Shown: positions 1-30,935 of the stretch, in pieces
Layout: every line of letters begins with the position of its first letter
Numbering within the stretch: position 1 is the stretch's first letter
Assembly: GCA_002269645.1 (NCBI GenBank)
Contig: NIVC01000293.1
Location: 124,001-188,000 of the forward strand
Direction of reading: 5' to 3'
Origin: Macrostomum lignano
Taxonomy: Eukaryota
DNA length: 64,000 nucleotides
Position numbers and translations under genes: made by a program
Notes under the pieces: generated by a model
What the model saw: only the letters and a program-made list of their open reading frames with translations
What the model was told of the DNA's origin: nothing
Database searches by the model: none

Positions 1-1836
1 AGAAAAAGTAATAACTTAGATGTACAGCTCGTCAAAAATCAAACTGAACTGCAAACAAGCAAACTCTAAAGTGCAAATAAAACGGAAGATTTTTAACTTA
101 TTTTATAAATTTTTTGCATAAACATAAATTTGACTAAGCAAACATAAACTTTAGTAGACTTGCAGATACAGAAATAACTTCATATTTTACTTTCAAGACC
201 ATACTATCACTAAAAACCAGCCAAAGCAATACAGTGAGTGACATCTCCGGTGGATATTAGTGACTGCTTTTCAGAAAATACTCGTACAAAAAAATACGGA
301 AAAACTGCTTTGAGTTTTGAGTTTTTAGTAAAATACACTGAACTTCAGATTATTTATGATCGATGGGCACGTCAAAAAAAGTCGAAGGTTGAAACCGCTT
401 AACCACAGCTATGGATAATACTATATTAAAACAGCCAACAAACAAAAACTGTCTGTTCATATAAACTTAAATTATGCTCTTTCTTTCCGATAGATTTTAA
501 ACATTGTCATTAATCTTGCTATGAGTAGCAGTATCTGAAACGAGGTAATAGCTCAATATTCACCAACAGAAACGCGCCCAAGGAGTCGGTAACAAAATGG
601 CATCTGCACAATAACAACGAAACAGCTTCTGGAATTTAAATAGGCTCCGCAGCCGATAATATAGTAGGCGACAGTATTCGTACTACACTGTGCACCAGCT
701 TGACTATTGTGATTCAATTTAAAACCAGAGTTTGACAGAGTGAAACTTTTTAACTGCTGCCCTGAGACATTCTCGGCTGGTCTGCCCATGAGGTTTGCTT
801 ATTATGTAAGCTTGATACGAAAAATCGGACATATTTGCAACAGAATGTTCATAGTCACTTGGTGTAACCTGTTGAAGGTGCCGACGGCGTCCGGGTGTTG
901 ACGGAATGCTCAACAGACTAGCTGAGGATGTCCAGCAGTTGATTCTTGCCCGCTGTCGAGGCTTGATCAGTGAATCTAGAGAAATTCTAATCAGGCTGTC
1001 CATAGTCACCTGGTGTCATCTGTTGAAGGTCCAGAAGCTCCGCCTGGGTGAAGGCTAGTGACCAACAAAGACAGAGCTAATGCAGACACATGTGGTCGAC
1101 GTGCTGTTGAAATTTGGAGACTTGGCAAGGCTGCACTGAGGCGCAGTGCTGATTGGCGCACAGGGGTGTACCGAATACACTAGCGCTAATGGGAAAAATC
1201 CGACCTTCAGGTAGAATCGTCGAATATCTCGACGGTCCGGAGGGCTGGCGACTTGATTCTTGTTTGAGAATGTGCGCAACAAAAAGTTAGTCCGTGTTCT
1301 TGAATTTCGTGTGCCTGCGTTGCTTCGTTCGGCGCAGCAAAAAAATTGTCTTTGATTTCCCCCCCCCCTCTTGGTAGTTCTACTGTTAATTGGTCTTCAG
1401 TTCACTTTAGAATCAATCAATGCAATACAGTAGCCATTGGCGAAAGTCTGCTGGCGTAGTGACAACTTACATTATGTTAAAACGCATTTCCGATAAATAC
1501 ATTTAAATGGTTTAAATCCTGACCAATTTAAAAAATATACCGGGCTTGATGACCAACATATCAAAAAGAAGACGCCGTTTGAGAACAAATGACCGGAAAA
1601 GATCTTAAGATCTTAAAAATCTCAAAACATCTAAAAAATTGCAAGCAAAATTGTGGGGTTTTGTTGTACGCTCGTAGATGTTGCAGTTAGCTTCATCGAT
1701 AAAGCTACTTGTCTTCGATAAATTTTAAACTGTGTCGTTAGTTAGCTTTTTCGAAATGATACCTTACTAGAGTAAAGTAAAAGTCTGAACAAAACTGCAT
1801 AACAGCGACTGGATTAACCAATAGAAACGCGCCAAA
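1..1836. repeat. Segmental duplication, near-identical to ~19900-21640
   Basis: Colinear match by eye, e.g. gatgtacagctcgtc(a/c)aaaatcaaactgaactgcaaacaagc at both starts and ggattaaccaatagaaacgcgccaaa at both ends; one ~100-bp indel near 440-535. Confidence 0.95.
553..772 (-). pseudogene. 3' fragment of array family gene (copy P0), fused to unrelated upstream sequence
   Basis: Translation SGQQLKSFTLSNSGF...IIGCGAYLNSRSCFVVIVQMPFCYRLLGRVSVGEY* aligns with the C-terminus of 12748-14331 (SGQRLRSLSLSTSGF...LLGRVSIG). No similarity seen upstream of ~775. Confidence 0.85.
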
Positions 1837-2204
1837 CAGTGGTGGGACTGAGAGGCAACCATTTTTTCGCGCCATTAAAAAATATTCGCGCCGTCCGAAA
1901 TTTCCTGCCCAGTGCCCCGCACTACTAAATTTCCTTTTATGCAGCCTTGGGGTCCCTTGTTACGAGCGTATAGTTAATTAATGGTCTATTATAAATATTT
2001 TTTTAATATCGTAAATTACGATCTTACGAATTTACTCTAATGAATGAAGTGGACACTTTTAACGAAGTTTTGACAGAGCGTCACGTTTATTTGTCATTGT
2101 CGCAAAGTAGATATACTTTTTTCGTGAAACACAAGTCCTCTCACTCACTTTCAGAAGTTTCAGTATTCGTGGTTCAGGCTCGTAGCAAAAGAAGCAGAAT
2201 AAGA

Positions 2205-2474
2205 GGTTGTATGTAAAAGACGAAGCAGATCAGATCGGTATGGAATACGGATCCATCCGTACATTGAAAGTAATGGGACCACGGATCAGTCAAAAGTATA
2301 ATAACAAATATTTAAAAACATTCTTAGTATTGGCACTTGACAGTTCTTTACATAAAATGGCATCTGCTTTCTTGCTTATTTGACTTTTGAGAAAAAAAAT
2401 CGACTTTAACACTAAATTTCGCTTATCCGTAGATCCGATGTAGATTCGATCCGCTCCGTCTTTTACATACCACC
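2205..2474. mobile_element. 270-bp MITE nested in the hAT element
   Basis: 27-bp TIRs GGTTGTATGTAAAAGACGAAGCAGATC vs GGTGGTATGTAAAAGACGGAGCGGATC (reverse complement of right end). Perfect 8-bp TSD GAATAAGA at 2197-2204 and 2475-2482. Confidence 0.9.
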
Positions 2475-2590
2475 GAATAAGATGATAAGAAATTTTATTC
2501 CTACTTATATGCGCATTAAATTCACTGTGATAACCAGTTCTAAACACAGTAGCATGGAGTCACATGGAGCATGATTGCATGAAGCGCACA

Positions 2591-4095
2591 TCAATTGTGT
2601 CTGAACTTTTTCTGCATAATACCTGCAGGCAGAGGAGTTGACACCGACTGCTCAACAGCCCGTCGCTTGAGAATGCTTTGCGCCAGTTTCTCAGACTCCT
2701 TCATCTTCTTTCGTTGCAGCTTCTCTTGTTGCTGCCGTAGTTCTTCGAGCTCCTGGTCCCTTGCTTCCTTGACCTTTGAAGACTCCGACAACAGCCGCTG
2801 AGCATCATCTCGCTGTTTCTGCTTCTGCTTGATCGCATCTGCCGTCGCATTGATAGACTTTTCCAAGTCACCATACACCTTGCTGGCACTCTTCTCACTT
2901 TGCAGCTCCATCAAAACTCGCTTCTCGAGCTCCTCTCGCTTCCGCTGTTCGTCCGCAGCCTTCTCCTCTTCCAGTCGTCGCCGATATGCAGCATCAGCAC
3001 TGGCGCACAAATTCTTCAGCCTCAAGGAGACTGGCAGTGTAGCAGCTGACCAATGCTTTGTCTGTAGGCAGGACCGCGAAACAACGAGTGCCTTGATGGT
3101 CTGCGTCCCCAGGCTGGAGCGTTTTTTCGTCACAACATCGTTTAAGTTACTAAAAATACGCTCAACTTCAGCATTGCCATGAGGCAAGACAGCTAACACT
3201 CGTGCTTTGCGCATCAGTAGAGGGCGGTTGCCAGCAGTGGCGACTTTGCTCCAGAAGTCAGTCACTGTCTCATTTGCGACTTCAGCATCACCATTGAGCA
3301 GATCGTGCTGATGAAGGCGAGCCTCGACCCGCAGGCTGTCAATATCGGCTTCTGGTACAATTGTAGGCAGCTGACTGGCTACAGTGGTAGCCCAGTGAAC
3401 GAAATGACTGTTAGATTTCTTTTTGGGGTCCAGAAGTTGGCATGCACGGAGGACTGGACTGCCAAGCGGCAAATATTCGAACAGCTTCTCGGTCCCCTTC
3501 TTAAAGAATGCCTTCACTGACTTCAAGCAAACCTGCTGGTCAGTCGCAGACATGTCTGCGAAGAGGCGCCTGGCAGGCTCACCGATGGCAATGCGAAGAG
3601 GCAGCCAGACAGTCATCCTTGACATCAAGCTTCCAGAATTTGACTGGCAGCTTTTCAGGAGCCACAAAGCACAAAAGCCAGCGGCGCGTCAGATCATTTA
3701 GTTGTGGGTAAAGGCGATGGATCTGGGTTCCTTCCTGCTGAAACAGCAACTCAAACTGCTGAAAGGGTTGCAGTACTTCAGCAAGAAAGTGCAGAAAGAA
3801 TTGCACTTTTGGATCTTGCACGTCAGCCTTCATGCTGGCAAAGTTTTCACCATGAGGTCGCGACTCGGAGAAGTACCGAATGAGCGGTTGAAGAAGTTGT
3901 AGCACGCGCTGCACAACAGACAGGAGCTGAAGCCATCTAGTTTCAACAGGCCGAAGGAAGACAAGCTTTTTAATTTCGTCAAACTCAGTGGCGATAGCAT
4001 GCAGCTTATCGCAGTCCGTGGTGGAGAATTTGAAATGGCAGTAAACATTGCGGACCAAAGTTTCCACGCGGAGACCCAACTCAGAAGCGTCGCAA
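2591..4095 (-). pseudogene. hAT transposase, N-terminally truncated, one frameshift near 3610
   Basis: Frames 3579-4079 and 2591-3667 join into a hAT-like protein: FLRPVETRWLQL (TRW motif) and VLPHGNAEVERIFS...KKRSSL (C-terminal dimerization region with catalytic E), then a charged coiled-coil tail. No N-terminal part or ATG. Confidence 0.85.
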
Positions 4096-4430
4096 GCGTC
4101 GCAAGCGTCACAAATGCCTACCTACCTACCTACCTACCTCGTAGTTACCTCCTAGCGAGTCACCACACTATATTTTGTGCAAAAAAACAGAGCTAGTGGA
4201 GTTATATTTATGTTCTGTAGGGAAGCTAAGAATGCAACCGTTCATACATCTTGCTCGATACAAGCCCAGAGCCACACTTGAAAGAAAATGAAGTTGCAGC
4301 ATAAACCGCACACACTAAATATAAATCCGCGCCATTCACACCTCAAAATCCGCACCACACCTGAAAAATCGCGTATTCGCGCCATCTTTACTGAAATTCG
4401 CGCCAGGCGCGAATTCGCGCCTCAGTCCCA

Positions 4431-5924
4431 TTACTGGCGCCAAAGGAGTCGGTGACTGCATGACCTGTGCACAAGAAGAACGAAACAGCTTGTGGAATCT
4501 AGGTAGGCACCGCTGCAGATTATAGATTGGCAGGTGGTATTGTAATTGCCCTGTCGACAAGTTTGGCAATAGTTTACGTAGTTGAAACCCGAGTTTGTCA
4601 GACTGAAACTTTTCAACCGCTGCCCTGAGCTGCTCACAATAACAGCATTTCCATTAGTTTCGAACACTGCAATCAATCCAGAGTCAATGACAGCGACACA
4701 AAAGTTCTGACTGTCCATCAGCTTCTTCACACCACCGGTGCTGATGTTTAATCGGTGTACAGCTGATGGGGTGGACAGTATTAAGCCGCGTCCTGAAACT
4801 GCTACACTCCGAGCGTCCTTCACATGATCGGGCAGCGTCAAGCTCTGCTGCAGCTCAAGCGACTCCAGAGAGAGACAGTTTACGCAACCGTTGCTGAGAA
4901 TGTACAGCTTCTCCATGTCATGAGTGAGACTTATTGGAGCTTGGCACTGCATATTCTGGACACTTCGCAACTGGGTGCCAGTCAGATCAGTCACAAATAG
5001 GGACTGATTGGTTCCAAGAAGAAATATCTGCTGAAGATGATCAACAAGTGTGCCTGAAGCTAACTGCACTCCGTTGTTACCAACGTTCCACTGGCTGATA
5101 ATTTGCATGTCTGAATTATAGACCTTGAAAAAACAATCCTGCGAATTATTACCCACACAAAAAGTGCTTCTGCTAGGGAGAGCTTCAAATCCGTTTTGCT
5201 TTGTCTTCGTGACTGCTTGAGCTGAGAAATAGTATCCAGCAGTATTGGTGCAAACAGCAGCGAGAATATAGGAACGGTTGGCCAATTTAGGCGCAATTTT
5301 TACAGTGGGCACGGCAGAGTCAAGTCTAGCTTTTAGTTTCTTATCCTCTGGATCCTCTGCCTCATCTGCAAAAGTCCTAACAGCTTGTTGCAATCTCAGT
5401 ACCTGGTGCACACTGTTGTCTACCGGATCGACAAACTCTTCTGATATCGGGACATCCTCAAGCGAGATCTGGACCTCTTGATGCAGCCTGAATCCTTTAG
5501 TTGAAACACCTTTGGCTTCCTCCTCGCCGATCTCGACCGAAAGTTTCTCTATGAAACTGAGAGCTTTCAAGTTTCGTTCCACATTGTCTATTTTGGAGTC
5601 CAATCTGCTCATCACATTTTCTCTGCACTGCTGCAATCTCTGAAAGATGGCGTCAAACAGATCAGCGGCCTCAGCTTTGTCGCTGGTCAGTTCAAACAGA
5701 GCTCCCTGGTTTGCTTTCAAGAGTTTATCTGTTTTCGATAATACCTCAGTGTTCTCTGATTTAATATCGGCGTATCTCTTTGCGAAAATCTTTTCATCTT
5801 TAGCGAGATGTCGCTTGCAGAGTTGCCCGTTCCAGTATGTTCCAAGACCTGACGAAGGCTCTGTGCAATGCGTCATGGTGCACGTCTGTGCATCTTATTC
5901 TGCATCGACGCTTTCAGTTGCCAT
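4431..5924 (-). CDS. Array family copy A1 (Zn-motif/coiled-coil/predicted beta-propeller), damaged at both ends
   Basis: Homologous ATG at 5924, but codon 10 is TAA (5895-5897); next in-frame ATG at 5876 opens 481 codons. The C-terminal VSIG is replaced by Q* by the hAT insertion; the displaced tail codons lie at ~1816-1836. Confidence 0.8.
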
Positions 5925-7997
5925 AGCTGCAAAGAGAAAACGTTAGGTATTGAACATACGAGTAATACTAATAATAACAATACTAAATGCTAATCGCTGC
6001 TGAAGTTGTTATAGGATTGATTGTTTATAAAGAAAGAATTTTTATACATGCAAGGGCTTGGGCTTGCTACCATACCATGCTGTACTGCATCGGAACCTCT
6101 CATTGCTTAATGCTTTCGGTTGGTATTGAGGTTGTACATATTTTTGCATCTAAGAATGCAAAAAATTGTCATGATTTGATGGGAAGCATTGATTCGGTGT
6201 TGAGACACTTAAGCTCCTCGGAAAGGGCTCAGTATTTCACTAAAATCCAGAGAGTTTTAATAAATTTGATGCTTATAAATGAAAACTATCTAAGAATTTA
6301 GAAAGTCATTAGCCTGACAGTTTTCATATCGTATAATCATGATAATAATTACAAAAAGTGAAAATGGGTTACCTAGTACATGTACCTAACTAAAATGAGC
6401 CCACATTTAAACTATAATGGTTACTAATTATTCAAATAACTAAGAAATGGCGATAAAAACGTTTGAAAAGAGAATTTTTTGTTACGCTATCTGCCAGTTT
6501 ATATATTGTGATTCAGAAAATACAAACTTGAAAACATATAGCAATAATTATAGTAAGGACAATAATATACCAACGGTAGATACAATCGAAGGGCGACATT
6601 TTTCATGAAAAAATAGACGAGCAAGACTGTGGAATCATAGCAAAACTTGCGAGTACTGGAACAAAAACAGAAATGCGTTAAGGTTCAAGAACAGTAAAGC
6701 AAGCTATAAAACATTATTTTAATTGTCGCTTAATTTCAGCACTAGATATTACAAAGTCGGTAAACATCAGAGTTTACTACCATCGAACTTCGAAATCTGA
6801 AGTTTTTTGAAGAAGGCTTCCTCACTCACAACCAAAAGCCCCCTGCTGCTTGCGCAAAAAAATTTCTGCCAACGCAAGGACCAAAATTTTCGAATATACG
6901 CGCACTTTCTATAGAGATTGGGATTGGTTGCTTGCACAAATTTATGTCAAGTGAGATTTTGTTAATATGAAGTTTATGAGATCATAAATTTTGACATCGT
7001 TAAGTCAGGCGATTTAACAAGTTGAAAAGTTATGGAGTGTGAAACCAACAACCTTCAGACAAGAGAGGTAAATACCTACGGCACATAGGTAGGTAGCAAC
7101 CTAACAAAACTTTCCTCATGACCTTTCTGTTATTTGAGTACCTTAACAGGTCGTTATCGAAAGTGATATATGGAATTAATAAGAATCATATGGCCACAAA
7201 ATTCTGGATTAACTGCTCAAAACTAGAAAAATAACTATTAAAATAATTTTCTAACTTCTAGACCAAAGCTATATATTTATGCATATCTATACGCTTGTAT
7301 AATGGAAAACGATTCTAAACAACAATTGGGTACTTAAAAAATAATAGCATAAACGTTAAATAGTTTCCGACAGTAGTAAAGTAGAAAAAGCTGTAGCATG
7401 TCTTAGTGAATACTTTCGGAAAATTTTGGGAATGCCAACACCACATTCCTAGCATAAAAGTATGTTTTCACATTGGTAACACTAAGATAGCACCGGACAT
7501 CGTGTTGGCTTATTTATCAATTAGAGTGAGCAAACAAAAGTACATATTAAAAATCCCAAACACCAATCGTCTTCTGTTCTAAATTGGACAGCTTAATTTA
7601 AAAAAGCATAAGAGCTATGCAGAAAGGTTGAAATGCTGAAATAAGATGGAATCTAAGGTTTATACTCATGCACACAGCCAGTAGCGTAGCCAAGGTCAAG
7701 AGGGGCTTAGAGTCCTGACAGAAAAGCTGATAGGAACATGAATTTCTAATAGCCAATGAATAACGCAAGTTTTTATAAGGTACAAAAACACTAAAGTTGT
7801 ATGGACTATAGAAATTCCTATTAATCTTATTTGTACCGCCATTCAGCTATATCGGCTGTCTCAACACAAAGCCAAGAGATCAAACTAGAAATGTATTGAC
7901 ACTCCCTATCATCAAATAAGTTTAAAACTCGGTAGCCCAGTTGAAAAAAACTTTCACTGTTTACAAAGTTTTAGTACTAGTAGGGCTGACTGACTTC
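5925..7997. repeat. Duplicated intergenic block, homologous to ~26570-29338
   Basis: Shared segments such as gcttgctaccataccatgctgtactgcatcg, agtcctgacagaaaagctgataggaacatg and gacactccctatca; the second copy carries extra SINE and MITE insertions. Confidence 0.9.
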
Positions 7998-8059
7998 TGA
8001 TATCAACCGAAAGTTTCTCTGCACAGCTGAGAGACCTCTGGATCTGCTCCATATCTGCA

Positions 8060-8416
8060 ATATTCGAGTCTAATCTACCAAGCAAGCACTTTCTCCCTGC
8101 ACTCATTCACTCTTTCAAGGACATCATCAAACAGGTCAGCCGCCTCAGCCCGGTCAGTCGTCAGCTCGAATTAAGCAGCTTTAGCGCGGTTTGTGAGCTG
8201 CAAAACACTAGCGAGTATCGAATTAGTTTCCTTCTTAATGCTGGCGAACCGACTTTTAAACTGATGTTTGTCACTCTCCAGATGCTCAGCGCAGAGGCCG
8301 GCCCAATAGTGTCCGCGGCCCGAAGCCGGGCTCTGGCAGTGGCTGAGGCTGCACAGTCGGCTTGCTGGTCGATCCTGCTCGTCGCTTGTTGCGCTTGATT
8401 TACGTTTTGTTGCCAT
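8060..8416 (-). pseudogene. Array family copy B1, 5' fragment with in-frame stop
   Basis: MATKRKSS...LCSLSHCQSPASGRGHYWAGLCAEHL...NRAKAA*FELTTDRAEAADLFDDVLE matches the family N-terminus; TAA at 8171-8173; similarity lost near 8060. Confidence 0.85.
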
Positions 8417-10851: not shown

Positions 10852-11415
10852 GGGACGCTTTCATAAGACCTAAATTTCACAACGCCTAAAACCACCACAC
10901 TTCACAACGCCTAAAACCACCACACTTCACAACGCCTAAAACCACCACACTTCACAACGCCTAAAACCACCACACTTCACAACGCCTAAAATATTTGCAC
11001 GCTCTTTCACATCGCCTAAATTTCATATCGACTAAATTTCACAACGCCTAAAATCAAAAGTGCAGCCCCCTTCACATCGCCTAAATTTCACATCGCCTAA
11101 ATTTCACATCGCCTAAATTTCATATCGCCTAAATTTCACAACGCCTAAAATCTTTGCTTCTCTCCTTCACATTCAGTTTTAGGTGTTGTGAAATTTAGGC
11201 GATATGAAATTTAGGCGTTGTGAAGGAGGCTGCATTTTCGATTTTAGGCGATATGAAATTTAGGCGATTTGAAGTAGGATGCATTTTCGGTTTTAGGCGT
11301 TATGAAATTTAGGCGATGTGAAGGAGCGTGCAGAAATTTTAGGCGTTATGAAATTTAGGTGATGTGAAGTCATGTGCTTTAGGCGTTGTGAAATTTAGGT
11401 CTTATGAAGTGCCCC
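10852..11415. mobile_element. Foldback-type MITE built of inverted tandem arrays, 9-bp TSD (Mutator-like by TSD length)
   Basis: Left half repeats TTCACAACGCCTAAA, right half its reverse complement. Termini GGGACGCTTTCATAAGACCTAAATTTCAC / GGGGCACTTCATAAGACCTAAATTTCAC; CCTAAAATA duplicated at 10843-10851 and 11416-11424. Confidence 0.8.
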
Positions 11416-12747: not shown

Positions 12748-14331
12748 TTAACCAATAGAAACGCGGCCAAGGAGTTGGTGATCGCATGACATGTACGCAA
12801 GAATAACGAAACAACTTGTGGAACCAAAGTAACCATCACCGCAGATGATAGATTCGCAGGTACTACCAGCGACATTGAACCCACACAATCGGCATTTTTG
12901 TTGCAGATTGTCAGCACTCTGTCTCATACAATTTGGGCAGATATAGCTAGATCGACAAGTTTGGCAATAGCTCACGTAGTTGAAACCAGAGGTTGACAGA
13001 CTCAAGCTTCTCAACCGCTGCCCTGAGCTGCTCACAAAAACCACATTTCCATTAGTTTCGCAGACTGCAATAAATATAGAGCCAATAACAGCGATACAAA
13101 AGTTCTGACTGTCTATCAGCTTCTTCACACCACCGGTGCCGATGTTTAATCGATGCACAGTTGATGGAGTAGCCAGAATTAAGCTGCGTCCTGAAGCTGT
13201 TACACTGCGAGCGTCCTTCACATGATCAGGCAGCTTCAAGCTCTGCTGCAGCTCAAGCGACTCCAGAGAGAGGCAGTTCACACAACCGTAGCTAAGAATG
13301 TACAGCTTCTCCATGTCATGAGTGAGGCTTATTGCAGCTTCGCACTGCACATTCTGGACACTTCGCAACTGGGTGCCAGTCAGGTCAGTCACAAATAGGG
13401 ACTGATTGGTTCCAAGAAGAAATATCTGCTGAAGGTGATCTACAAGAGTACCTGCAGCTAGCTGCACACCGTCGTTATTAACGTTCCACTGACTGATTAT
13501 TTGCATGTCTGAATTAAAAACCGAGAAAAACCAATGCTGGAAACTATTATTGTTAGCCACACAAAAAGTGCTTCCGCTAGGGAGAGCTTGAAATCCGTTT
13601 TGGTTTGTCTTCGTGACTGCTTGAGCTGAGAAATAGTATCCAGCAGTATTGCAGCAAACAGCAGCCATACGATAGCGTACATTGTTGGCCAAATTAAGCG
13701 CCACGTTAACATTGGGCACAGCAGACTTAAATCTACTTTCTCGCTTCTTATCCTCAGGATCCTCAGCCTCGACGGCCACAGTTTCAACAGCCTGTTGCAA
13801 TCTCAGTACCTGGTGCACGCTGTTGTCTACCGGATCGACAAACTCTTCTGATATCGGGGCATCCTCAAGAGAGATCTGGACCTCTTGATGCAGCCTGAAT
13901 CCTTTAGTTGAAACACCTTTGGCTTCCTCCTCGCCGATCTCGACAGAAAGTTTTTCTATGAAACTGAGAGCTCTCAAATTCTGCTCCACATGGTCTATTT
14001 TAGAGTCCAATCTGCTCATCACATTTTCTCTGCACTGCTGCAATCTCTGAAAGATTGCGTCAAACAGGTCAGCGGCCTCAGCTCTGTCGCTGGTCAGTTC
14101 AAACAGAGCTCCCCGGTTTGCTTTTAAGAGCTCGTTCGTCTTTGATAATGGTTCAGTGTTCTTTGATTTTATATCGGCGTATCTCTCCTCGAAAATCTTT
14201 TCATCTTTACCGAGATGCCGCTCGCAGAGTTGCCCGCTCCAGAATTTGCCAAGACCTGACGACGGCTCCGTGCAATGCGTCATGGTGCACGTCCGTGCGT
14301 CGGTATCTGCATCGACGCTTTCAGTTTGCAT
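12748..14331 (-). CDS. Array family copy A2, intact 527 aa
   Basis: Uninterrupted ORF with C-x4-C-x15-C-x2-H near the N-terminus, helical/coiled-coil middle and beta-rich C-terminal half; carries an extra CPNC...CRLC insertion; a polypyrimidine-AG precedes the ATG by 2 nt. Confidence 0.92.
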   Translation of the reverse strand: MQTESVDADTDARTCTMTHCTEPSSGLGKFWSGQLCERHLGKDEKIFEERYADIKSKNTEPLSKTNELLKANRGALFELTSDRAEAADLFDAIFQRLQQCRENVMSRLDSKIDHVEQNLRALSFIEKLSVEIGEEEAKGVSTKGFRLHQEVQISLEDAPISEEFVDPVDNSVHQVLRLQQAVETVAVEAEDPEDKKRESRFKSAVPNVNVALNLANNVRYRMAAVCCNTAGYYFSAQAVTKTNQNGFQALPSGSTFCVANNNSFQHWFFSVFNSDMQIISQWNVNNDGVQLAAGTLVDHLQQIFLLGTNQSLFVTDLTGTQLRSVQNVQCEAAISLTHDMEKLYILSYGCVNCLSLESLELQQSLKLPDHVKDARSVTASGRSLILATPSTVHRLNIGTGGVKKLIDSQNFCIAVIGSIFIAVCETNGNVVFVSSSGQRLRSLSLSTSGFNYVSYCQTCRSSYICPNCMRQSADNLQQKCRLCGFNVAGSTCESIICGDGYFGSTSCFVILAYMSCDHQLLGRVSIG

Positions 14332-16247: not shown

Positions 16248-16259
16248 CTGGTAAGCAAT

Positions 16260-16620
16260 AGCAGACAGTGCTTCCAGTTTCTCACGCAGTCTCTCAATAA
16301 AAAAGGCTACTGTCCACTGGATCGACCCGTTATTTAAAACCAGTGCACCTCGAACCGATATCTCATGCTTCAACCTAGTTTGGAGACTGGAGGCTGCCAA
16401 CAAGATTTCTTTGTGACTCCGTAACTCTAGTTTCAGCTAAAATATTTTCTAGAAAAACTGTCTGACCCTCATATGCTCAGTATGAATTTACAAATCCACT
16501 CTACTCATAACCTACTCTGCAGTGCTGCACACTTTCAAGATTAGCGTTAAACAGGTCAGCTGCTTCAGCATTGTCACTTATTAGCCCGAGCTGAGCAATA
16601 TTGGCATGTTTAATAGTAAG
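16260..16620 (-). pseudogene. Highly decayed array family copy
   Basis: LISDNAEAADLFNANLESVQHCR matches LTSDRAEAADLFDAIFQRLQQCR; further downstream RLKHEISV and VDPVDSS occur in shifted frames. Confidence 0.75.
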
Positions 16621-16799
16621 ACTCATTTTATTTGCACCTCGGTGCAAGTAAATGCTGCGACCTCCCTGTGGTGAAGTTGAAGAGCTGCGGTGGCCAACAG
16701 AGGCAGAACAAAGCGACGGCAGTGGAGCGAACGTCGGCGTATTGAGCGGACGTGCAGGCAGCCGGTCTAGCAGGATGACCTCAGCAAGCGAGGGCAGAG

Positions 16800-17100
16800 C
16801 TGGAGAGGCTCCGTAAGAGCAGACGGCCAACTTAAGAGGCGGAGGAGGCGCTGGAAGCTGTCTACCTGCAGCGGCAACAGACAGCTGTTGACGACGCCAT
16901 CCCGGCCGCCACCGGCGCTGGACACAAAGCCAAAGGGCGTGTTACCTGGTCCGCCATCAACGCTCTGACTGGGGCGAAAGCGGCGCATCCCGCTCAACCT
17001 GGCTGGCGACACTCCAGATAAGCGCAGAAATGAGCTGCGCGAGTTCTTCGCTATCATCATCAAGGCGCCCCCGCTGCCTAACAATCTGAGGCTGCTTAGC
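16800..17100 (+). mobile_element. Probable decayed non-LTR retrotransposon ORF2 fragment
   Basis: Broken reading EAEEALEAVYLQRQQTAVDDAI...GRVTWSAINALTG(R)KRRIPLNLAGDTPDKRRNELREFF resembles the endonuclease-RT linker region of LINEs. Recognition from memory; not searched. Confidence 0.45.
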
Positions 17101-19899
17101 TGCTACCCGGGACGCTGTTGCCCTCAGTGAAAGGCTTCGAATAGCAGTATAAGTTGGAGCTGAATTAATGCCACGCCACAAAAACCCGGTTGGCAAAGCA
17201 AAAATTGATAGTAATCGAGCAAGAACGGAAACGCAAGAGGAACAGCTCAAACAAAGGCATAAAACCCTCAGTAGGCATGGGGGCGCTGCACACAAGGGGG
17301 TAGAAAGGACACAACCGCGCCAACCCCACGCGCACACACAAAGCACTAAGTTAAAGGGTGCTACTAAAGGGCACGCCTCACTACACACCAAGGCAACCGT
17401 TGAGTTTTAAACTTATCCGATTCGGGTGTCACAAAATACATATATTTTGACATTTTTATTGAGAAACCGAGCCTAGGAGCGTATACGTCTTGAGAGTTTA
17501 TTAGTAAAAACAGCTCTAAAGTAGACAGGTGTTGACAAAATTAGCTATTTTTATTGTCTAAGCCAACAGTCAACTCCAAGCAAAACTCATAAAAGGCTTA
17601 GGGCAAAAAGAGCAAAATAGAGCAGCTAACAGCTATCGATTTTGCTAGCTGAGATGACACTATAGCGAGCAACTATTTGAAAGCCTTTCTGAAGTTGAAT
17701 CTGAGTCAAATTCAAAGGTTTTCATGCTTTTCGGCACCCCAGTTTATGGGTAATCTAAATTTTAAATTTGGGGGAATCCCAGAAAAAAATACCCACTAAT
17801 CCGGGCTTGTGTACAAACCCTAATGCTGCAGTCAACGCAACCTACTACTCAAGTGATTCCCGATTGTCTCTCCAAATCCCAGCTAGATCCTAAAACAGTC
17901 TAATCCAAAAACACGCGGTGGACAGCGGCTTACGTGGCGTTTTTCAGCAGCGGAGAATAGTCGCTCGTATATTGGCAGATTACGATGGGGGCGCTGACGA
18001 ACAGAGCAGGTGTACGCGATCGAAAAAGGGGCAGCTGGGGACCGCCAATTAAACACAGTTTAAGCCCAAACGGGAGGACAGGAAAGCAGTCCGGAGAGGG
18101 CCGAGAAAGTGGCCTGTAAGGGATCTCAATAAATAGAGCTGCCAGGCCGGGCGCATGGGGAGGGGAGAAAGAACTTGGGAAAAGAAAACCGGGAGTTAAG
18201 TAGACACAACAAAGGCCCAGCCAATCAATTAGAGAAAGATGACTTAACCCTGGGCATCCAATCACACGCGAGACGGAAGTAAAACCACCACAACTAGACT
18301 ACATTAGCAGAAGGTATAAAAATGGGTGACTATTTGGGGGCGGGGGGTGACTAAGCAGCCAGACGGCTACAAGGGTGGGTTGGGGCTGACAATACACTAA
18401 AATCAAGCAAGGCTGGCTAGGTGGAGAACTACACGTGTAGCCCATTCACTACATAAAAATAAATGCTCTACAACACCTAAAAATAATTAACTATAGTATT
18501 ATTCATTTTGATAAGCTGATGTGCTTGTTACCGACATTGCAGAGTCTCTCATTAAGAAATTCATTAGCTGTACCAAAAAACTGTAGAGAAACTGCGTGTT
18601 AAGAAGGCTTAGTGGCCAAATGATGAAGTCTATATACAATGCTATGTACAATCAAAAGAACGAATACAAAAATATATTTTTTTCTCATTGCTCTGTTTTG
18701 GAATCACTCAATTCGCTAGAAAATCGAAACAAAACAAGTTCTACTTTTGTAGCATTCAAGAGAAGTAAAGCAGAAGCCTAAAAGGCTCAGTATACAAAAA
18801 TGTCAAAATTGAAAACAAATCAATCCAATCAAACTGTCAAGAAATTGACAGGAAAAATAAAGTAAGTACAACGAATATATAAAATTGCACGCAATGTTGC
18901 TAAAACATAAAATTGATCAGAAGTTAAATTTTGCAATTGGTAAGGCACACAAATAGGTGCACAAAACTACTATTACTGAAATCACAGGTAAATAATGGCT
19001 ATTCTGGATATACAATTTCACCATAAATCTAAGCAAAAGACCACAAGCTTGTGTAAAACCAAGCTGAGGGAGGTAAGTAAAATCAAAACAGACATTAAAG
19101 AGAAAGCTTAGCTAATCTTAGTTCTAATTTTAAATTCCAATAATTTCTACAAGGATGTCACCATAAAGCTCTACAATGGAACCCAAAGCTAGGTCCCGCA
19201 CCAAACCGACTGGAGTGCATAACTGCTCGGAACAGTTGCCTAAAATCGCCCAGATCCCGTCGCGGTCTCTCCCTTGATGTCTTAGAGAATAAAGTGCATA
19301 AAATGGGGATATAACGTCAATTTAGGACATTAAAGAACCCAAAACGAAGCCTTAAAGCTACTAGAATCGGTAGCTGGTCGGACCAATTGATTAGAAACGC
19401 GAACATGTCAATCAGGTCTCCTCTTAGAAACATCAGGTTTGCTCAACAAATTGTACAAGTAGCAAATCACGAATTGCATCATTTTATTTTTTCTTTCATT
19501 CCAGTACTTAGTTAGACCTCCCATATGTAAATATAAAAAACACATGGAAATAGACGAAAACGGCCCATATGCTATGTGGCAATGATTCGAGTACATAAAA
19601 AGCAATAAAAATCGGGTTGATGGAAAATAAGAATTGGAATTCAGCATTGAAAAAAGTATTTTTTTACTTTTTTAACGTTGACTGAAAATAAATTCTAATT
19701 CTTATTTAGAGCAATTCAAATTACTCAAATCACTGTTTTGAAAGTATATCACGGCATGTTCTATATCATACGATAGCTTGGCCACAGCGGGAAATATGGT
19801 TTAGAATCAATAGCACCACAATTAAACGCCAACTAACTTATCACGCAAATTTTCTTAGACACAATACTGAAGGGGCCACAAACACACAAGCTAATTTCA

Positions 19900-21640
19900 A
19901 GAAAAAGTAATAACTAAGATGTACAGCTCGTCCAAAATCAAACTGAACTGCAAACAAGCAAACTCTAAAGTGCAAATAAAACGGAAGATTTTTAACTTAT
20001 TCTATAAATTTTTGCATAAACATAAATTTGACTAAGCAAACATAAACTTTAGTAGGCTTGCAAATACAAAAATAACTTCATATTTTACTTTCAAGACCAT
20101 ACTATAACTTAAAAACCAGCCAAAGCAATACAGTGAGTGACATCTCCGGTGGATATTAGTGACTACTTTTCAGATAATAATCGTACAAAAAAATACGGAA
20201 AAACTGCTTTGAGTTTTGAGTTTTTAGTAAAATATTGTACACTGAACTTAGATTATTTATGATCATGGGCACGTCAAAAAAAGTCGAAGGTTGAAACCGC
20301 TTAACCACAGCTATGTATATTACTATATTAAAACAGCGAACATCTGAAACGAGGTAACAGCTCAATATTCACCAACAGTAACGCACCCAAGGAGTCGGTG
20401 ACAAAATGGCATCTGCACAATAATAACGAAACAGCTTCTGGAATTTAAATAGGCTCCGCAGCCGATAATATAGTAGGTGACAGTATTCGTACTACGCTGT
20501 GCACTAGCTTGACTATTGTGATTCAATTTAAAACCAGAGTTTGACAGAGTGAAACTTTTTAACTGCTGCCCTGAGACATTCTCAGCTAGTCTGCCCATGA
20601 GGTTTGCCCATTATGTAAGCTTGATACGAAAAATCGGACATATTTGCAACAGAATGTTCATAGTCACTTGGTGTAACCTGTTGAAGGTGCCGACGGCGTC
20701 CGGGTGTTGACGGAATGCTCAAGAGACTAGCTGAGGATGTCCAGCAGTTGATTCTTGCCCGCTGTCGAGGCTTGATCAGTGAATCTAGAGAAATTCTAAT
20801 CAGGCTGTCCATAGTCACCTGGTGTCATCTGTTGAAGGTCCAGAAGCTCCGCCTGGGTGAAGGCTAGTGACCAACGAAGACAGAGCTGATGCAGACACAT
20901 GTGGTCGACGTGCTGTTTAAATTTGGAGACTTGGCAAGGCTGCACTGAGGCGCAGTGCTGATTGGCGCACAGGGGTGTACTGAATACACTAGCGCTTATG
21001 GGAAAAATCCGACCTTCAGGTAGAATCGTCGAATATCTCGACGGTCCGGAGGGCTGGCGACTTGATTCTTGTTTGAGAATGTGCGCAACAAAAAGTTAGT
21101 CCGTGTTCTTGAATTTCGTGTGCCTGCGTTGCTTCGTTCGGCGCAGCAAAAAAATTGTCTTTGATTCCCCCCCCCCTCTTGGTAGTTCTACCGTTAAGGT
21201 CTTCAGTTCACTTTAGAATCAATCAATGCAATGCAGTAGCCATTGGCGAAAGTCTGCTGGCGTAGTGACAACTTACATTATGTTAAAACGCATTTCCGAT
21301 AAATACATTTATATGATTTAAATCCTGACCAATTTAAAAAATATACCGGGCTTGATGACCAACATATCAAAAAGAAGACGCGGTTTGAGAACAAATGACC
21401 GGAAAACATCTTAAGATCTTAAAAATCTCAAAACATCTCAAAAATTGCAAGCAAAATTGTGGGGTTTTGTTGTACGCTCGTAGATGTTGCAGTTAGCTTC
21501 ATCTATAAAGCTACTTGTCTTCGATAAATTTTAAACTGTGTCGTTAGTTAGCTTTTTCGAAATGATACCTTACTAGAGTAAAGTAAAAGTCTGAACAAAA
21601 CTGCATAACAGCGACTGGATTAACCAATAGAAACGCGCCA
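19900..21640. repeat. Second copy of the 1-1836 block; its left flank (~18850-19900) is also homologous to ~9600-12350
   Basis: See 1-1836. Further shared motifs: gatagctggtcggacca at ~10605 vs ggtagctggtcggacca at ~19370, and gggaaatatggtt at ~12058 and ~19790. Confidence 0.9.
20362..20581 (-). pseudogene. 3' fragment of array family gene (copy P0'), duplicate of 553-772
   Basis: SGQQLKSFTLSNSGF...PFCHRLLGCVTVGEY*. Confidence 0.85.
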
Positions 21641-23130
21641 AAGGAGTCGGTGACTGCATGACCTGTGCACAAGAAGAACGAAACAGCTTGTGGAATCTAG
21701 GTAGGCACCGCTGCAGATTATAGATTGGCAGGTGGTATTGTAATTGCCCTGTCGACAAGTTTGGCAATAGTTTACGTAGTTGAAACCCGAGTTTGTCAGA
21801 CTGAAACTTTTCAACCGCTGCCCTGAGCTGCTTAAAAAAACAGCATTTCCATTAGTTTCGAACACTGCAATTAATCCAGAGTCAATGACAGCGACACAAA
21901 AGTTTTGACTGTCCATCAGCTTTATCACACCACCGGTGCAGATGTTTAATCGATGTACAGCTGATGGGGTGGACAGTATTAAGCCGCGTCTTGAAACTGC
22001 TACACTCCGAGCGTCCTTCAAATGATCAGGCAGCTTCAAGCTCTGCTGCAGCACAAGCGACCCCAGAGAGAGGCAGTTCACGCAACCGTTGCTAAGAATG
22101 TACAGCTTCTCCATGTCATGAGTGAGGCGTAGTGGAGGTTGGAACTGCACATTATGGACACTTCGCAACTGGGCGCCACTCAGGTCAGTCACAATTAGGG
22201 ACCGATTGGTTCCAAGAAGGAATATCTGCTGAAGATGATCGACAAGAGTACCTGAAGCTAGCTGCACTCCGTTGTTCTTAACGTTCCACTGGCTGATAAT
22301 TTGCATGTCTGAATTACAGACCATGAAAAACCAATACGGCGAATCATTAGCCACACAAAAAGTGCTTCCGCTAGGGAGAGCTTGAAATCCGTATTGGTAT
22401 GTCTTCGAGACTGCTTGCGATGAGAAATAGTATCCAGCAGTATTGTTACAAACAGCAGCGAAAATATATTGATACGAAACATTGGCTAAATTAGACACAT
22501 TTACTTTGGGCACGGCAGACTCTATTCTAGCTTTTAGATTCTTGTCCTGGACTTCAGGATTCTCGGCCTCAGCGGCCATAGTCTCAACAGCCTGTTGCAA
22601 TCTCAGTACCTGCTGCACACTGTTGTCTACCGGATCGACAAACTCTTCTGATATCGGGGCATCCTCAAGCGAGATCCGGACCTCTTGATGCAGCCTGAAT
22701 CCTTTAGTTGAAACACCTTTGGCTTCCTCCTCGCCGATCTCGACCGAAAGTTTCTCTATGAAGCCGAGAGCTCTCAAGTTCTGCTCCACATTGTCTATTT
22801 TAGAGTCCAATCTGCTCATCACATTTTCTCTGCACTGCTGCAATCTCTGAAATATTGCGTCAAACAGGTCAGCGGCCTCAGCTCTGTCGCTGGTCAGATC
22901 AAACAGAGCTTCCCTGTTTGCTTTTAACAGTTCATCAGTCTTCGACAATACCTCAGTGTTTTTTTTTTTATATCGGCGTATCTCTTTGTAAAAATCTTGT
23001 CATCTTTAACGAGATGTCGATCGCAGAGTAGCCCGCTCCAGAATTTGCCGAGACCGGACGAGGGTTCCGTGCAACGCGTCATGGTGCACGTCTGTGCATC
23101 GGATTCTGCATCGACACTTTCAGTTGCCAT
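21620..23130 (-). CDS. Array family copy A3, full length except a 1-nt frameshift in a T-run at 22959-22969
   Basis: MATESVDAESDAQTCTMTRC...RYADIKK (from 23130) continues in another frame as ...SKTDELLKANREALF...LLWRVSIG*. The run has 11 T where paralogs have 12 nt. Confidence 0.85.
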
Positions 23131-23299
23131 AGCTAAAAAGAGAAATAACAAACATAGTATTAGCTATTAAACATATAAGAAATACAATATTGTCTTGATA
23201 GTAAGATACACCGGTTGTGCCAACAGAAAACTCTGTATATTATTTGCAGATAGCTGCTCTTCGTAGCAGTACAATGTTGCATTAGAAACAGAGAGAAGG

Positions 23300-26469: not shown

Positions 26470-26568
26470 CTCGCTCCAAAATTTGCCGAGAACGGATGAA
26501 GGCTCTGTGCAACGCGTCATGGTGCACGTCTGTGCATCGGATTCTGCATCGACGCTTTTATTTGCCAT
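26470..26568 (-). pseudogene. Array family copy A4, 5' stub
   Basis: MANKSVDAESDAQTCTMTRCTEPSSVLGKFWS then abrupt loss of similarity; the upstream acceptor and flank are retained. Confidence 0.85.
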
Positions 26569-27819
26569 AGCTGAAAAGAGAAAATATTAGCTAGTAAATA
26601 CACGAGTAATACCAAAAGTATATATTAATTCGTACTAAATGCTAATTGCTACTAAAGCTGTCATAGGACTGATCGTTTATAAAAAGCGAATTTTATATAT
26701 ATGCAATAATGGCTTGCTACCATACCATGCTGTACTGCATCGAAACTTCTCATTGTTCAGTGCCTTAGGTTGGTATTGAGGTTGTACATAGTTTTGCGTC
26801 TAAAGCAAAAAAATTAGTCATGATTTGATGGAAATCATTGATTTTGTGTTAAGACGTTTAAGCTCCTCAGGAAGGGCTCGGTATTTCACTAAAATCCAGA
26901 AAAAGTTTTAACAAATTAGATGCTTATAAATGGAAAATATAAAAAATTTAGGAAGTCATTATCGGACAGTTCTATTTTTGTATAATCATGATAATAAGCA
27001 TAAAAAGTGAAAATCAGTTACCTAGTAGCTACCCAGAGCTGAGATACAAAATAATATGCTTATAATTATTCGAATAACTAAAAACTGGCGTCAAAAACAT
27101 TTGAAAAATGAGAAACTTTATTTGTGACGCAATCCGCCAGTTTATGTTGTGGTTTAGAAAAACCAACTTAAAAAACTTCGGCAAAAATTATAGTAAGTAA
27201 CATAAAATAACAAAAAGATACATGCGGTGAATACGATCGAAAGGCAACATTTTTTATGACAAATATACAAGCTAGACTGGGGAATCATAACTTTCGAGTA
27301 CTGGAACAAAAAAACAACAAAAATTAGGCTAGCTAAAAAAATTACGAGCGCGTAATTTTAATCCTATATACTAAAAATCGGTGCTAAATTTCAGCCCTGG
27401 ATATTACAAATTTACGCTCGTAGGGTAAGCGAGATTTCAGTAATATGAATTTTATGAGATCATAAATTTGACATCGGTAAGTCAGGCGATTTTACAAGTT
27501 GAAAAGTTATGGAGTGTAAAGGCAACAACCTTTAGACAAAAAAGGTACCTACTTGCATTGTTTAGGAATCTAACGAAACTTTCCCCATGACTTATCACTT
27601 AGTTGAGTACTTTAACAGGTCTTTATTGAGAGATATGAAATTGACAAAAATTACAAGTTATATGGCTCAAAACTCTGGGTTTACTCGTACTGCTCAAAAG
27701 TAGCCAATAACTATTACAATTATTTTTTATAAAAAAATAACTATGGAAAAAATAACTAAAATAACATAAAGATGTGAAGACTTCTAGAACAAAGCTATAT
27801 ATTTATGCATATCTATACG

Positions 27820-28537: not shown

Positions 28538-28967
28538 CAGGGTTTTTTACCACAATTAGTACCCCATGAGGTATTAGTCAACTGATTTGGGGTACTATTT
28601 TGCCCATTAATCCCCAGAAAAGGGTACTAATTTTTATCGAGTTCAATTGAAAAAAGTTAAGCTTTTTTTAAATTAGCAATTTAATTAAAATTCTGGCTGG
28701 CCCGGTATGGGTCTTGTATATCCAGGCACTTGTGTGGTGAGTCAGACTGTCAGGCTAAAAGGAAGAGAGGGTTGGAAACTTGGAATATATTTGTCAGTCT
28801 CGCTCAACCCAACTCTCAGCCCCTAGGACTGGCTCAGCCTTTGGGTGGGTGGGCCCAAGGCCCTGCAGAATTAGAAATTTCGTGGGGTATTACTCCTCCA
28901 AAATGGGGTACTACTTAGAGGCTTGATACCCCAATTCGGGTACTAATCAGCAGTGAAAAAAGCACTG
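28538..28967. mobile_element. 430-bp hAT-type MITE
   Basis: Ends CAGGGTTTTTT / CAGTGCTTTTTT (reverse complement); TSD TTTTATAC / GTTTATAC; repeated GGGTACTA subterminal motifs. Empty site ggtttatactc at ~7657-7667. Confidence 0.8.
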
Positions 28968-29411
28968 GTTTATACTAAGTAGTATAAGCTTTATACTCAT
29001 GCACAGTCAGTAAAGTGGCCAAGGTCATGAGGGACTTAGAGTCCTGACAGGGTCCTGACAGAAAAGCTGATAGGAACATGACTTTCGAATAGTCAGTGAA
29101 CAACGCAAGTTTTTATAAGCTTATAGAAACACTGGAGTTGTATGGACTATAGAAATTCCTATTAATTTTATTTATCCCGCCATTCAGCTACGAGTATACC
29201 GACTGTCTCAACACAAAGCAAAGACGTCAAACTAGAAATGTATTATGACACTCCCTATCATGTAATAAGTTCAAAACTCGGTAGCTCAGTTTTAAAAACT
29301 CACTTTAAAGTTTGAGTCTTAGTAGAGCTGAGTGACTTCGTTAACAGGGAAAAGATGTGCTGTATTGAATAGAAAGATATACTTCTAAATAAATCGGTTT
29401 CGGTTATAGCA

Positions 29412-30935
29412 CTAGCAGATAGACACTCGCACTAAAACGCGATCGTTGCACGACAAGCTGCATATCAGCAGAAAGGAGCTCGAAGATTCTCGGCTGGCGC
29501 CACAGCAGCTAATTGACTGCAGAACATACGATACACCACAGTTAGCACACGTCTTGAGATAGTTTACGCCTAGTGGCACCAGATCAATCACTTTAATCAG
29601 TTGTCTGTTGCTGCTAAGAAGTGCAACGCGGCCATTATTTTCGCAGGCAGCCAGAAATCCAGATCCAATGTCTGCAACGCACAGCACATTTTGACTATTG
29701 CTCTGCCAGACTTTTACGCATCTTTTCGTGCTGAGACTCATTCGATACACTGCTGACTGGGTGGCCAGTATTAAACTACGACCAGAAACTGTCATATGAC
29801 GAACATTCGCAGTGTCTTTCGAGAGTTTCATGCTATCCTGAAGTTCGCAAGTGTCCAGCGACAGGCAGTTTATGCAGCCATCACCGAGAATGTACAGCTT
29901 CTCCATATCGTTGACTATGATCGGCATTTCAGCTTGAAACTGGACATTGTCAATAGTTCGAAGCTGTGTACCAGCTAGGTCCGTCACAATCAAAGAATTG
30001 TTATTACCAAGCATATAGATTTGCTGCTGGTGATGCACAAGAGCTGCAGACACTAATACAACATTGTTCGATGGCTGATTTCTTTGGCTAAGTACCACGA
30101 GTTCGTTGCTATAGAAAGCGATATGCCAGTTCGCACCATAGTTACCTACTGCAAGTACGCAGGAGCTTGGCAAAGCCTGAAAGCCATTCTGTTGCGTCTT
30201 GGAAACCAGCTGAGCGGAGTAAAAAAATCCATCCGTACGATTGCAGTTGAAAACGAATTGGATGTAGTTTGTAAGAAGAACATTGGCAGTTGGCACAGCT
30301 GACTCCAGCAAAGATCGCATTGCTGCCCCGTCTGCATCCTCGGCAATTGCAGCTCGAGTCTTTGTCTCCTGCAGCAGCTTCTGGACCAGTTCAACGCTGC
30401 TGTCAACTGGATCAGTCCAAGCATCGGAAATGGGAGCATCCTCAAGTGCGAGTTGCATCTTCTTGCTCAACTGGAAACTTTTAACAAGATCGCCAGACAT
30501 TTCAGTCCCGTTGATATCTGCTCGAAGCTTTTCAAAGAAGTGCAACGACTTCAGACTGGCGTCCATGCTGTCGATCTTGGCGTCCAGCCTGCCAATGACG
30601 GTACTGCGGCAGCGCTGGACAATCTCGAGAATCTCTTCAAACATGTCTGACGCATTGGCTCGGTCGCTGGTCAGCTCGAACAGAGCGCCGCGCGTCAAGT
30701 CCATCTGCTCGGCAACGCGGCGCATTGCACCATCGATGTTCGCCTGACGATAAGAGTAGTAGCTCTCTCGGAATCGATCGGCGTCTCGCTTCAGATGGGC
30801 GGCGCACAAGGGCCCGTCCCAGTGGCTGCCCTGACCAGCAGCGTCTTGGCCACAGTTAGGCAGACTGCAAACATCGTGCTGCTGCTTGTTGTCGCCTTGC
30901 TGCTTTCCTGACGTTGCTTTTTTGGCAGAAGACAT
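29412..30935 (-). CDS. Array family copy B2, intact divergent paralog, 507 aa
   Basis: Uninterrupted ORF. Shares C-x4-C-x15-C-x2-H, ALFELTSDRA, LEDAPIS..DPVD, QNGFQALPS, LIVTDLAGTQLR, DMEKLYIL and the terminal RVSI with the A copies. Confidence 0.92.
   Translation of the reverse strand: MSSAKKATSGKQQGDNKQQHDVCSLPNCGQDAAGQGSHWDGPLCAAHLKRDADRFRESYYSYRQANIDGAMRRVAEQMDLTRGALFELTSDRANASDMFEEILEIVQRCRSTVIGRLDAKIDSMDASLKSLHFFEKLRADINGTEMSGDLVKSFQLSKKMQLALEDAPISDAWTDPVDSSVELVQKLLQETKTRAAIAEDADGAAMRSLLESAVPTANVLLTNYIQFVFNCNRTDGFFYSAQLVSKTQQNGFQALPSSCVLAVGNYGANWHIAFYSNELVVLSQRNQPSNNVVLVSAALVHHQQQIYMLGNNNSLIVTDLAGTQLRTIDNVQFQAEMPIIVNDMEKLYILGDGCINCLSLDTCELQDSMKLSKDTANVRHMTVSGRSLILATQSAVYRMSLSTKRCVKVWQSNSQNVLCVADIGSGFLAACENNGRVALLSSNRQLIKVIDLVPLGVNYLKTCANCGVSYVLQSISCCGASRESSSSFLLICSLSCNDRVLVRVSIC

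Follow-up and report, generated by a model that had tools for sequence, protein, structure and literature searches.

The 64,000-nucleotide stretch of the Macrostomum lignano genome analysed here (hereafter the window; assembly GCA_002269645.1, contig NIVC01000293.1, about 124,001-188,000) carries a tandem array of genes and gene fragments belonging to one family, whose proteins combine an N-terminal Cys3His motif, a long helical segment and a predicted propeller. The family is uncharacterised, well delimited and flatworm-restricted, and it presents the familiar layout of zinc module, coiled coil and propeller in a new combination. We consider it rather probable that this same-strand array, confined to M. 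lignano in the databases searched, encodes modular zinc-knuckle/rod/propeller proteins that would serve as recognition or adaptor scaffolds.

The array, its copies and their turnover

Family pieces were located by tblastn with the two intact proteins and by a scan of the six-frame translation with a hidden Markov model (HMM) of the family. A preliminary description of this DNA had counted at least nine same-strand copies in 31 kb, and both searches agree with it: nine pieces were recovered, all on the minus strand, of which two are intact, two near-intact and five relics, with the intact and near-intact copies lying where they had first been placed (Table 1). The copies of the array fall into A types (about 75-85% mutual identity), a B type (about 42% identical to A, the value also found between the intact A2 and B proteins), truncated C types and D types, the last of which sit just outside the window.

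Table 1. Family copies of the window and the transposon inserted into one of them (ORF, open reading frame; TIR, terminal inverted repeat; iE, independent E-value)
Feature	Position	Strand	Remarks
C-terminal relic	562-765	minus	74% DNA identity to 21619-21827; duplicates 20371-20574 within the ~20-kb repeat
hAT transposon, 2,600 bp	1837-4436		TIRs 1837-1852 and 4421-4436; 8-bp target duplication GCGCCAAA
A-type copy A1, near-intact	4431-5924	minus	Zn motif at 5808-5882
C-type N-terminal mini-gene relic, aa 1-141	7984-8416	minus	x14 Zn motif 8282-8353; internal stop and frameshift
A-type gene A2, intact 527-aa ORF	12748-14331	minus	Zn motif at 14215-14289
Strongly decayed helical-segment relic	16387-16647	minus	tblastn E 2.8e-4, HMM 0.006
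C-terminal relic of about 68 codons, covering the final propeller strands	20371-20574	minus	tblastn E 6e-4, HMM iE 1.8e-4; 74% DNA identity to A3 region 21619-21827
A-type copy A3, full length	21620-23130	minus	Zn motif at 23014-23088; longest ORF 442 aa
A-type N-terminal relic, 32 codons, first two Cys	26473-26568	minus	upstream region retained to about 27312
B-type gene, intact 507-aa ORF	29412-30935	minus	Zn motif C24-x4-C29-x15-C45-x2-H48 at 30795-30869

Two further loci were compared with the window. The first, L003, is contig 103,200-124,028 taken in reverse, which shares the window's first 28 bases and extends the array leftward; the second, L002, is a duplicate locus on contig NIVC01000254.1, for which the comparison covers the 31 kb fetched. 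The M. lignano assembly is redundant owing to the duplicated karyotype of the DV1 line (PMC5730564), and L002 is therefore treated as a homeologous or allelic copy and not as an independent locus.

A1 carries a TAA nonsense codon at codon 10 (5895-5897), and the frameshift of A3 is a single 1-nt deletion within an A-run near 22960-22966, which could be a homopolymer error of long-read assembly; A3 has a near-identical intact counterpart, P0002, on another contig. Among the relics, the N-terminal A-type piece retains recognisable upstream DNA (26472-27312 is 78% identical to 5828-6667), and the decayed helical segment still keeps the most conserved motif of the family, LISDNAEAADLF...VQHCR. This last relic lies within a window-specific block of 2.75 kb (14695-17444). 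The same block is missing from L002 and L003, and also holds an AT-rich minisatellite (15894-16080) and a 144-aa ORF with no Pfam match. The truncated C type consists of the zinc motif and about the first 100 residues of the helix. C-type paralogues with an open ORF of 145 aa occur at L002 23820-24257, L002 30530-30967 and L003 7592-8029, and one of them carries a gene annotation. A functional short isoform was considered for these ORFs and set aside, as the ratio of nonsynonymous to synonymous differences per site (pN/pS) between those of L002 and L003 is about 1, which is neutral, with no constraint seen; despite the one annotated gene, their sequences indicate that they are probably relics.

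The array extends at least 16 kb past the left edge of the window. Window positions 1-1836 repeat 19900-21642 at 95-98% identity, and 4437-5939 repeat 21635-23145 at 90% identity, while L003 adds two intact 502-aa A copies and another C-type piece, together with two fragments, one B/D-like from the propeller and one D-type from the N-terminus. Taken together, the repeats and the content of L003 imply a unit of about 20 kb, in the order C-terminal relic, A, C-type, A, that occurs twice in tandem. L002 is collinear with the window from 36042 down to 4437 at 87-98% identity, but has one copy of the ~20-kb unit in the 31 kb fetched, as against two tandem copies at the window locus. Between the same two loci the B gene with its flank shows 96.8-98.6% identity and 0.015 synonymous substitutions per site (dS), whereas the positionally matching A copies have a dS of 0.18, and this difference suggests that the A block has been reshuffled by unequal exchange. 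Among the A copies dS ranges from 0.085 to 0.27, and between A and B it is saturated.

Nonsense, frameshift and deletion mutations are found in the copies, beside a transposon insertion. We therefore see the features expected of birth-and-death turnover, as the preliminary description had proposed: tandem paralogues of differing age, pseudogenes and fragments, and copy content that is unequal between the duplicate loci, with an extra ~20-kb unit relative to the fetched part of L002, a spread of dS values and several types of lesion. Birth-and-death evolution by way of the ~20-kb tandem unit is well supported. The array expands by tandem segmental duplication, and copies die when a nonsense or frameshift mutation, an internal deletion or a transposon strikes them.

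The transposon insertion can be followed in detail. The hAT element is bounded by 16-bp TIRs (CAGTGGTGGGACTGAG / CTCAGTCCCATTACTG) and contains degraded transposase ORFs on the minus strand (2591-4079), with a hAT dimerisation domain, and is itself non-autonomous or degraded. Its insertion replaces the last four codons of A1, so that ...RVSIG* becomes ...RQ*, and the residues lost correspond to the final, propeller-closing strand of the AlphaFold model. The empty site is kept in A3, at 21635-21642.

Several family members are annotated genes, and the annotation of M. lignano was built from assembled transcripts with trans-splice and poly(A) evidence (PMC5730564), from which it follows that the annotated members are transcribed. 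The intact B-type ORF is the annotated protein P0016, and it is the only family gene called in the window between 19.4 and 41 kb. Each copy had been described as having one coding exon, and this stands for the coding sequence but probably not for the mRNA, in that the A copies have a CAG acceptor 2 nt upstream of the ATG. More fully, they share the arrangement TACTAGCTAAT-ATTTTCTCTTTTCAG-CT-ATG, interpreted as a branch point, a polypyrimidine tract and an acceptor 2 nt before the start codon, and so their mRNAs are probably spliced or trans-spliced. In the L002 gene models P0001 and P0002 an N-terminal relic is the first exon, joined over about 9.4 kb to the CAG acceptor of an intact A copy. 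The splice skips a pseudogene, and the relic with its promoter acts in these models as an alternative first exon (L002 10001-10180 and 19470-19540); relic and acceptor are also present in the window, at 26473-26650 and 14332-14400.

Predicted protein architecture and relatives

We used AlphaFold to model the 507-aa copy from a single-species alignment of 14 sequences, with a mean predicted local distance difference test (pLDDT) score of 75.5; this supersedes an earlier model of the 527-aa copy, based on a 10-sequence alignment, which had a pLDDT of 58.5. Residues 1-19 of the model are disordered, residues 20-60 have a pLDDT of 80-86 and the propeller is near 88. Short strands bear C24 and C29, and a helix starts at C45-x2-H48; a knuckle combined with ligands at the N-terminus of a helix is the arrangement of treble-clef zinc sites. 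The long helix is continuous over about 100 residues (45-147), has a hydrophobic periodicity of 3.5 residues (p 0.02-0.03), and is followed by helices at 150-165, 177-199 and 204-212. After the helices AlphaFold places 23 long strands, enough for six four-stranded blades. The strand at 499-506, the last, is paired with the two opening strands (215-231), and a low-confidence Cys-rich loop (452-485) breaks up blade 5.

When searched with Foldseek, the model matched many propellers with probability 1.0, among them RACK1, WDR5, G-beta and BamB, at a template-modelling (TM) score of about 0.5, with a root-mean-square deviation of 8-9 Å from the WD40 proteins. In the viral library BFVD, with target-length normalisation, a 262-aa NHL-repeat protein scores best (TM 0.67). 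Of the 50 best PDB structure matches none has NHL in its name; most are WD40-type propellers, and a few belong to other propeller classes. On this modelling a propeller fold is well supported, and the structure matches leave its class generic. The zinc motif/coiled-coil/propeller layout of the preliminary description is thus upheld by the long helix and propeller of the model, and a predicted structure lacking a propeller, which had been named as an outcome that would speak against the proposal, was not obtained. We regard the prediction of a modular protein, in which a rod links a Cys3His knuckle to a six-bladed propeller, as well supported.

The proposed zinc motif is the most constant part of the family. 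When the window and three related loci are translated in six frames, the pattern C-x4-C-x14-16-C-x2-H occurs at family loci only, preceded by just 12-23 residues. Every undecayed copy has the spacing C-x4-C-x15-C-x2-H, and x14 is seen solely in the decayed copy at 8282-8353. No subfamily departs from the four putative ligands, from one Gly or from an L-C-x2-H-L core, and the ligands hold even where identity is only about 20%. The motif had first been described as including a conserved Trp; the Cys and His pattern stands, while the Trp is kept in the local A-D clade and missing from a distant subfamily. That the motif is no canonical two-zinc B-box is confirmed, as there are just four invariant ligands and zf-B_box was unmatched by whole proteins and N-terminal peptides even at E<=10. 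Conversely, the suggested resemblance of its spacing to zf-C3Hc3H found no backing, as no N-terminal peptide or whole protein matched Pfam zf-C3Hc3H at E<=10, a negative that covers detectable similarity only, since the HMMER filters drop most very weak matches. A Pfam WRC match (E 0.03) was rejected as the identity of the motif because it covers C-x2-H alone.

A second Cys cluster lies in the blade 5 loop of the propeller, where all A, B and D types have C-x2-C-x8-10-C-x4-C, or CC. Among the aligned full-length copies A2 alone has a 25-aa Cys-rich insertion in this propeller loop, ICPNCMRQSADNLQQKCRLCGFNVAGS, which supplies an extra C-x2-C-x11-C-x2-C (loop region at window 12748-12952, aa 459-500). 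By its sequence this insertion resembles a zinc-ribbon-like knuckle pair.

Relatives were sought widely. Eight proteins matched the 507-aa copy in a full scan of 1.84 billion representative proteins, and sequence and profile searches of 5.8 billion proteins returned only M. lignano entries labelled 'hypothetical' or 'uncharacterized'; no relatives outside M. lignano were found by the sequence and profile searches, including one with a profile of the distant subfamily, or by the exhaustive representative search. The lineage restriction suspected at the outset is therefore seen throughout both protein sets. The distant subfamily (P0006, P0009 and P0010) is 19-23% identical to the other members and has the N-terminal motif and overall layout in common with them. 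P0006, a 254-aa member and P0009 form a same-strand tandem trio in a further locus (L001 10001-18477), adjoining a protein kinase gene, and tandem expansion is thus a property of the whole superfamily.

We scanned every long copy, 14 members of the family and six N-terminal peptides against Pfam; the matches were all sub-threshold and were spread over propeller families that are unrelated to one another (Utp8, CNH, RSE1, WDR5, PQQ_2, NHL and WD40), with coiled-coil noise. With database entries reading 'hypothetical protein' only, the family is indeed unnamed, as had been proposed. In the 14 members no RING family was found at E<=10; NHL was matched by one repeat in one member, a distant one (E 0.0066, 16.9 bits, below the 20-bit cut-off), and WD40 by one member (E 0.075), which does not amount to WD40 membership. 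CNH gave weak partial-model matches in three of the 14 (best E 0.0055, 17.0 bits against a gathering score of 26 bits), so that these are not CNH proteins by this measure, although UniProt labels P0007 'CNH domain-containing'; the N-terminal architecture of the family is also unrelated to that of CNH proteins. Among PDB sequences nothing significant was found for the 527-aa protein, the family profile or the N-terminal profile, the best match being the Vps18/Pep3 propeller (E 0.047). A full-length match to a characterised family, which would have spoken against a new family, was accordingly not found in the Pfam, PDB or protein searches.

Selection and genomic surroundings

Selection was estimated by the pairwise Nei-Gojobori method for six A copies, with a binomial test against pN/pS = 1. 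Among the A copies pN/pS is 0.41-0.64 and falls significantly short of 1 (binomial p between 0.04 and 3e-7), and A2 is under significant purifying selection against its paralogues. Divided by region, pN/pS is 0.23-0.62 in the helical part and 0.41-0.98 in the propeller. The intact A copies are under purifying selection that is significant but relaxed, and most relaxed in the propeller. Windows of 30 codons with pN/pS above 1 occur in five places. Substantial nonsynonymous change is present in the one at aa 196-225, which takes in the linker and first strands, in the one at 241-270 and in the one at 465-494, in the Cys loop, and those at aa 136-165 and 301-330 have very few substitutions behind them. 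As a sign of diversification these local peaks are suggestive only.

The array has a conserved neighbour at 32407-36933 on the minus strand, a gene whose exons encode an AKAP-17A-like RNA-binding protein, with Pfam RBD_AKAP-17A matches at 34411-34950 and 36502-36933, and this gene forms the upstream boundary of the array at both duplicate loci. Beyond it lie a GC-rich long interspersed nuclear element (LINE) at 38889-42591 on the plus strand, with endonuclease, reverse transcriptase (RT) and RNase H over three overlapping frames, an AT-rich LINE at 52189-55530 on the minus strand, which has an intact 1113-aa endonuclease and RT ORF and may still be active, and an RNase H/integrase fragment of a long terminal repeat element at 56204-57496 on the plus strand. 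Satellites occur at 10860-11408 (a palindromic block built from 25-, 16- and 49-bp units), 37092-37500 (29 bp x 14.6), 60623-61454 (23 bp x 36) and 62150-64000 (15 bp x 123, GGGGCTTTAGCACCA), the last continuing past the end of the window.

Function and competing explanations

We propose that each protein would be cytosolic and modular, with a short disordered N-terminus followed by a single Cys3His zinc knuckle, whose last two ligands would sit at the start of the ~100-residue helix. Three shorter helices would come next, and then a six-bladed propeller, closed by the C-terminal strand and bearing the Cys-rich loop. The rod may dimerise, as TRIM-type coiled coils do, and so present two propellers as ligand-binding platforms, with paralogues differing mainly in the surface loops of the propeller. 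Such a protein would be a non-enzymatic recognition or adaptor scaffold, having no RING and hence no E3 ligase module. We infer this rod-dimer mechanism by analogy with TRIM, COP1 and PRP19-type architectures and from the site of relaxed selection.

Several points weigh against the scaffold reading. Zinc binding, dimerisation and ligand binding are functions that we infer, the heptad signal of the helix is modest and has register shifts, the model is built on a shallow alignment (14 sequences from one species), and the number of blades is taken from a secondary-structure string rather than from coordinates. Outside short windows pN/pS is below 1, and diversifying selection is without statistical proof. 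The 527-aa ORF of A2 has no annotated gene of exactly that product, and family gene ids were not found in the M. lignano literature, full text or supplementary tables, that was searched. Finally, other Macrostomum species are apparently unrepresented in the searched protein sets, and so the family may be restricted to a whole genus or clade and not to the one species.

The explanation that competes best, which we nevertheless think unlikely, is that the family is an extremely diverged, RING-less descendant of TRIM-NHL proteins, with the knuckle being half of a B-box2 (zinc site 1), the propeller a degenerate NHL and the action TRIM-NHL-like, by RNA binding and translational repression. The preliminary description had drawn a parallel with TRIM-NHL proteins, and its part concerning module order holds, whereas homology does not follow, with RING absent, the B-box unmatched and NHL matched below significance only. 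Like TRIM71/LIN-41, Brat and TRIM2/3, the family has a zinc module, a rod with back-folding helices and a six-bladed C-terminal propeller of about 290 residues, and the identical domain order and the six blades both speak for descent. The one long and three short helices of the model recall TRIM coiled coils, the top viral-library match is an NHL-repeat protein, and the distant member's NHL match, sub-threshold as it is, points the same way. The x15 between the ligand pairs equals the spacing of pairs 1 and 3 in the B-box2 consensus, a lead and no test. TRIM families, moreover, expand in tandem, lineage-specific arrays. Set against this, neither the 14 members nor the six N-terminal peptides have a zf-B_box, RING or NHL match above threshold, even at E<=10; the top 50 PDB structure matches are mostly WD40-type and include no NHL-named entry; the N-terminal profile is unmatched in PDB sequences; and an hhalign comparison with the B-box/coiled-coil sequence of TRIM5alpha gave a probability of 0.3%, a weak negative at best. 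The family also differs from TRIM-NHL proteins in having no RING, one four-ligand site where the B-box has seven or eight ligands for two zinc ions, and an extra Cys-rich loop inside blade 5, and in PDB matches that favour generic WD40-type propellers. Homology to TRIM-NHL proteins may exist, but no defining feature that was checked by sequence was clearly present.

The scaffold reading can also be compared with COP1, PRP19 and TRAF7, which likewise have a small metal or U-box module at the N-terminus, followed by an oligomerising coiled coil and by a propeller that acts as substrate receptor; chain C (identity unchecked) of a COP1-containing complex, entry 9m0y, ranked third among the full-length structure matches. 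These proteins, however, have a seven-bladed WD40 propeller and an E3 module, whereas the family has six blades and no E3 module.

Any role of the scaffold in defence or recognition is pure conjecture, and a defence role is no better supported than one in reproduction, where fast-evolving orphan genes are reported to be common in the genus (PMC7336406). The second explanation, which we hold to be quite improbable, is that the family consists of fast-evolving intracellular germline or sperm proteins, with turnover arising from sexual selection or conflict and not from pathogen recognition. That reproduction-related genes of Macrostomum evolve rapidly, often having no homologues, is reported in the same paper and favours this view, as do the high pN/pS and the taxonomic restriction of the family, but family gene ids were not found in those supplementary tables of PMC7336406 that were examined. 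A role in reproduction is compatible with the structural model of knuckle, rod and propeller.

The last explanation, that the ORFs are non-functional decaying duplicates or mobile-element cargo, open through youth alone, would fit the many broken copies, the transposon-rich region, the neutral truncated C-type ORFs and the intact copies (several) that are unannotated, but is very hard to credit given that A copies are under significant purifying selection (p as low as 3e-7), that the four zinc ligands and a number of propeller residues do not vary between subfamilies of ~20% identity at different loci, that several members have transcript-derived gene models, and that the copies are confined to a few tandem loci and not dispersed, where the sole clear element touching one, the hAT, inserted into A1 while a paralogue retains the empty site.

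Returning to the scaffold reading, its boldest extension, which we offer as a doubtful idea, is a tripartite-like recognition protein, in which a dimeric coiled coil would join a single-zinc half B-box knuckle to a Cys-looped six-bladed propeller, that was born in or diverged past recognition within the macrostomids and forms an intracellular immune or restriction family diversifying by birth-and-death, a flatworm analogue of the vertebrate TRIM expansions.

As a transgenic model, tractable by RNA interference, M. lignano serves the study of regeneration, stem cells and sexual selection, and a large unexplored share of its genome consists of taxonomically restricted genes. The family described here is a compact and testable case, in which a minimal zinc knuckle is newly combined with a rod and a propeller and intact copies are under selection. 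In the array there is clear evidence that copies are still being gained and lost, such as a dated transposon hit and a relic that now serves as an alternative first exon. If the propeller is a diversifying recognition surface, the family would be among the few candidate innate-recognition families of free-living flatworms; if it is not, the array would be a clean example of how polyploid, repeat-rich genomes make and discard orphan genes.

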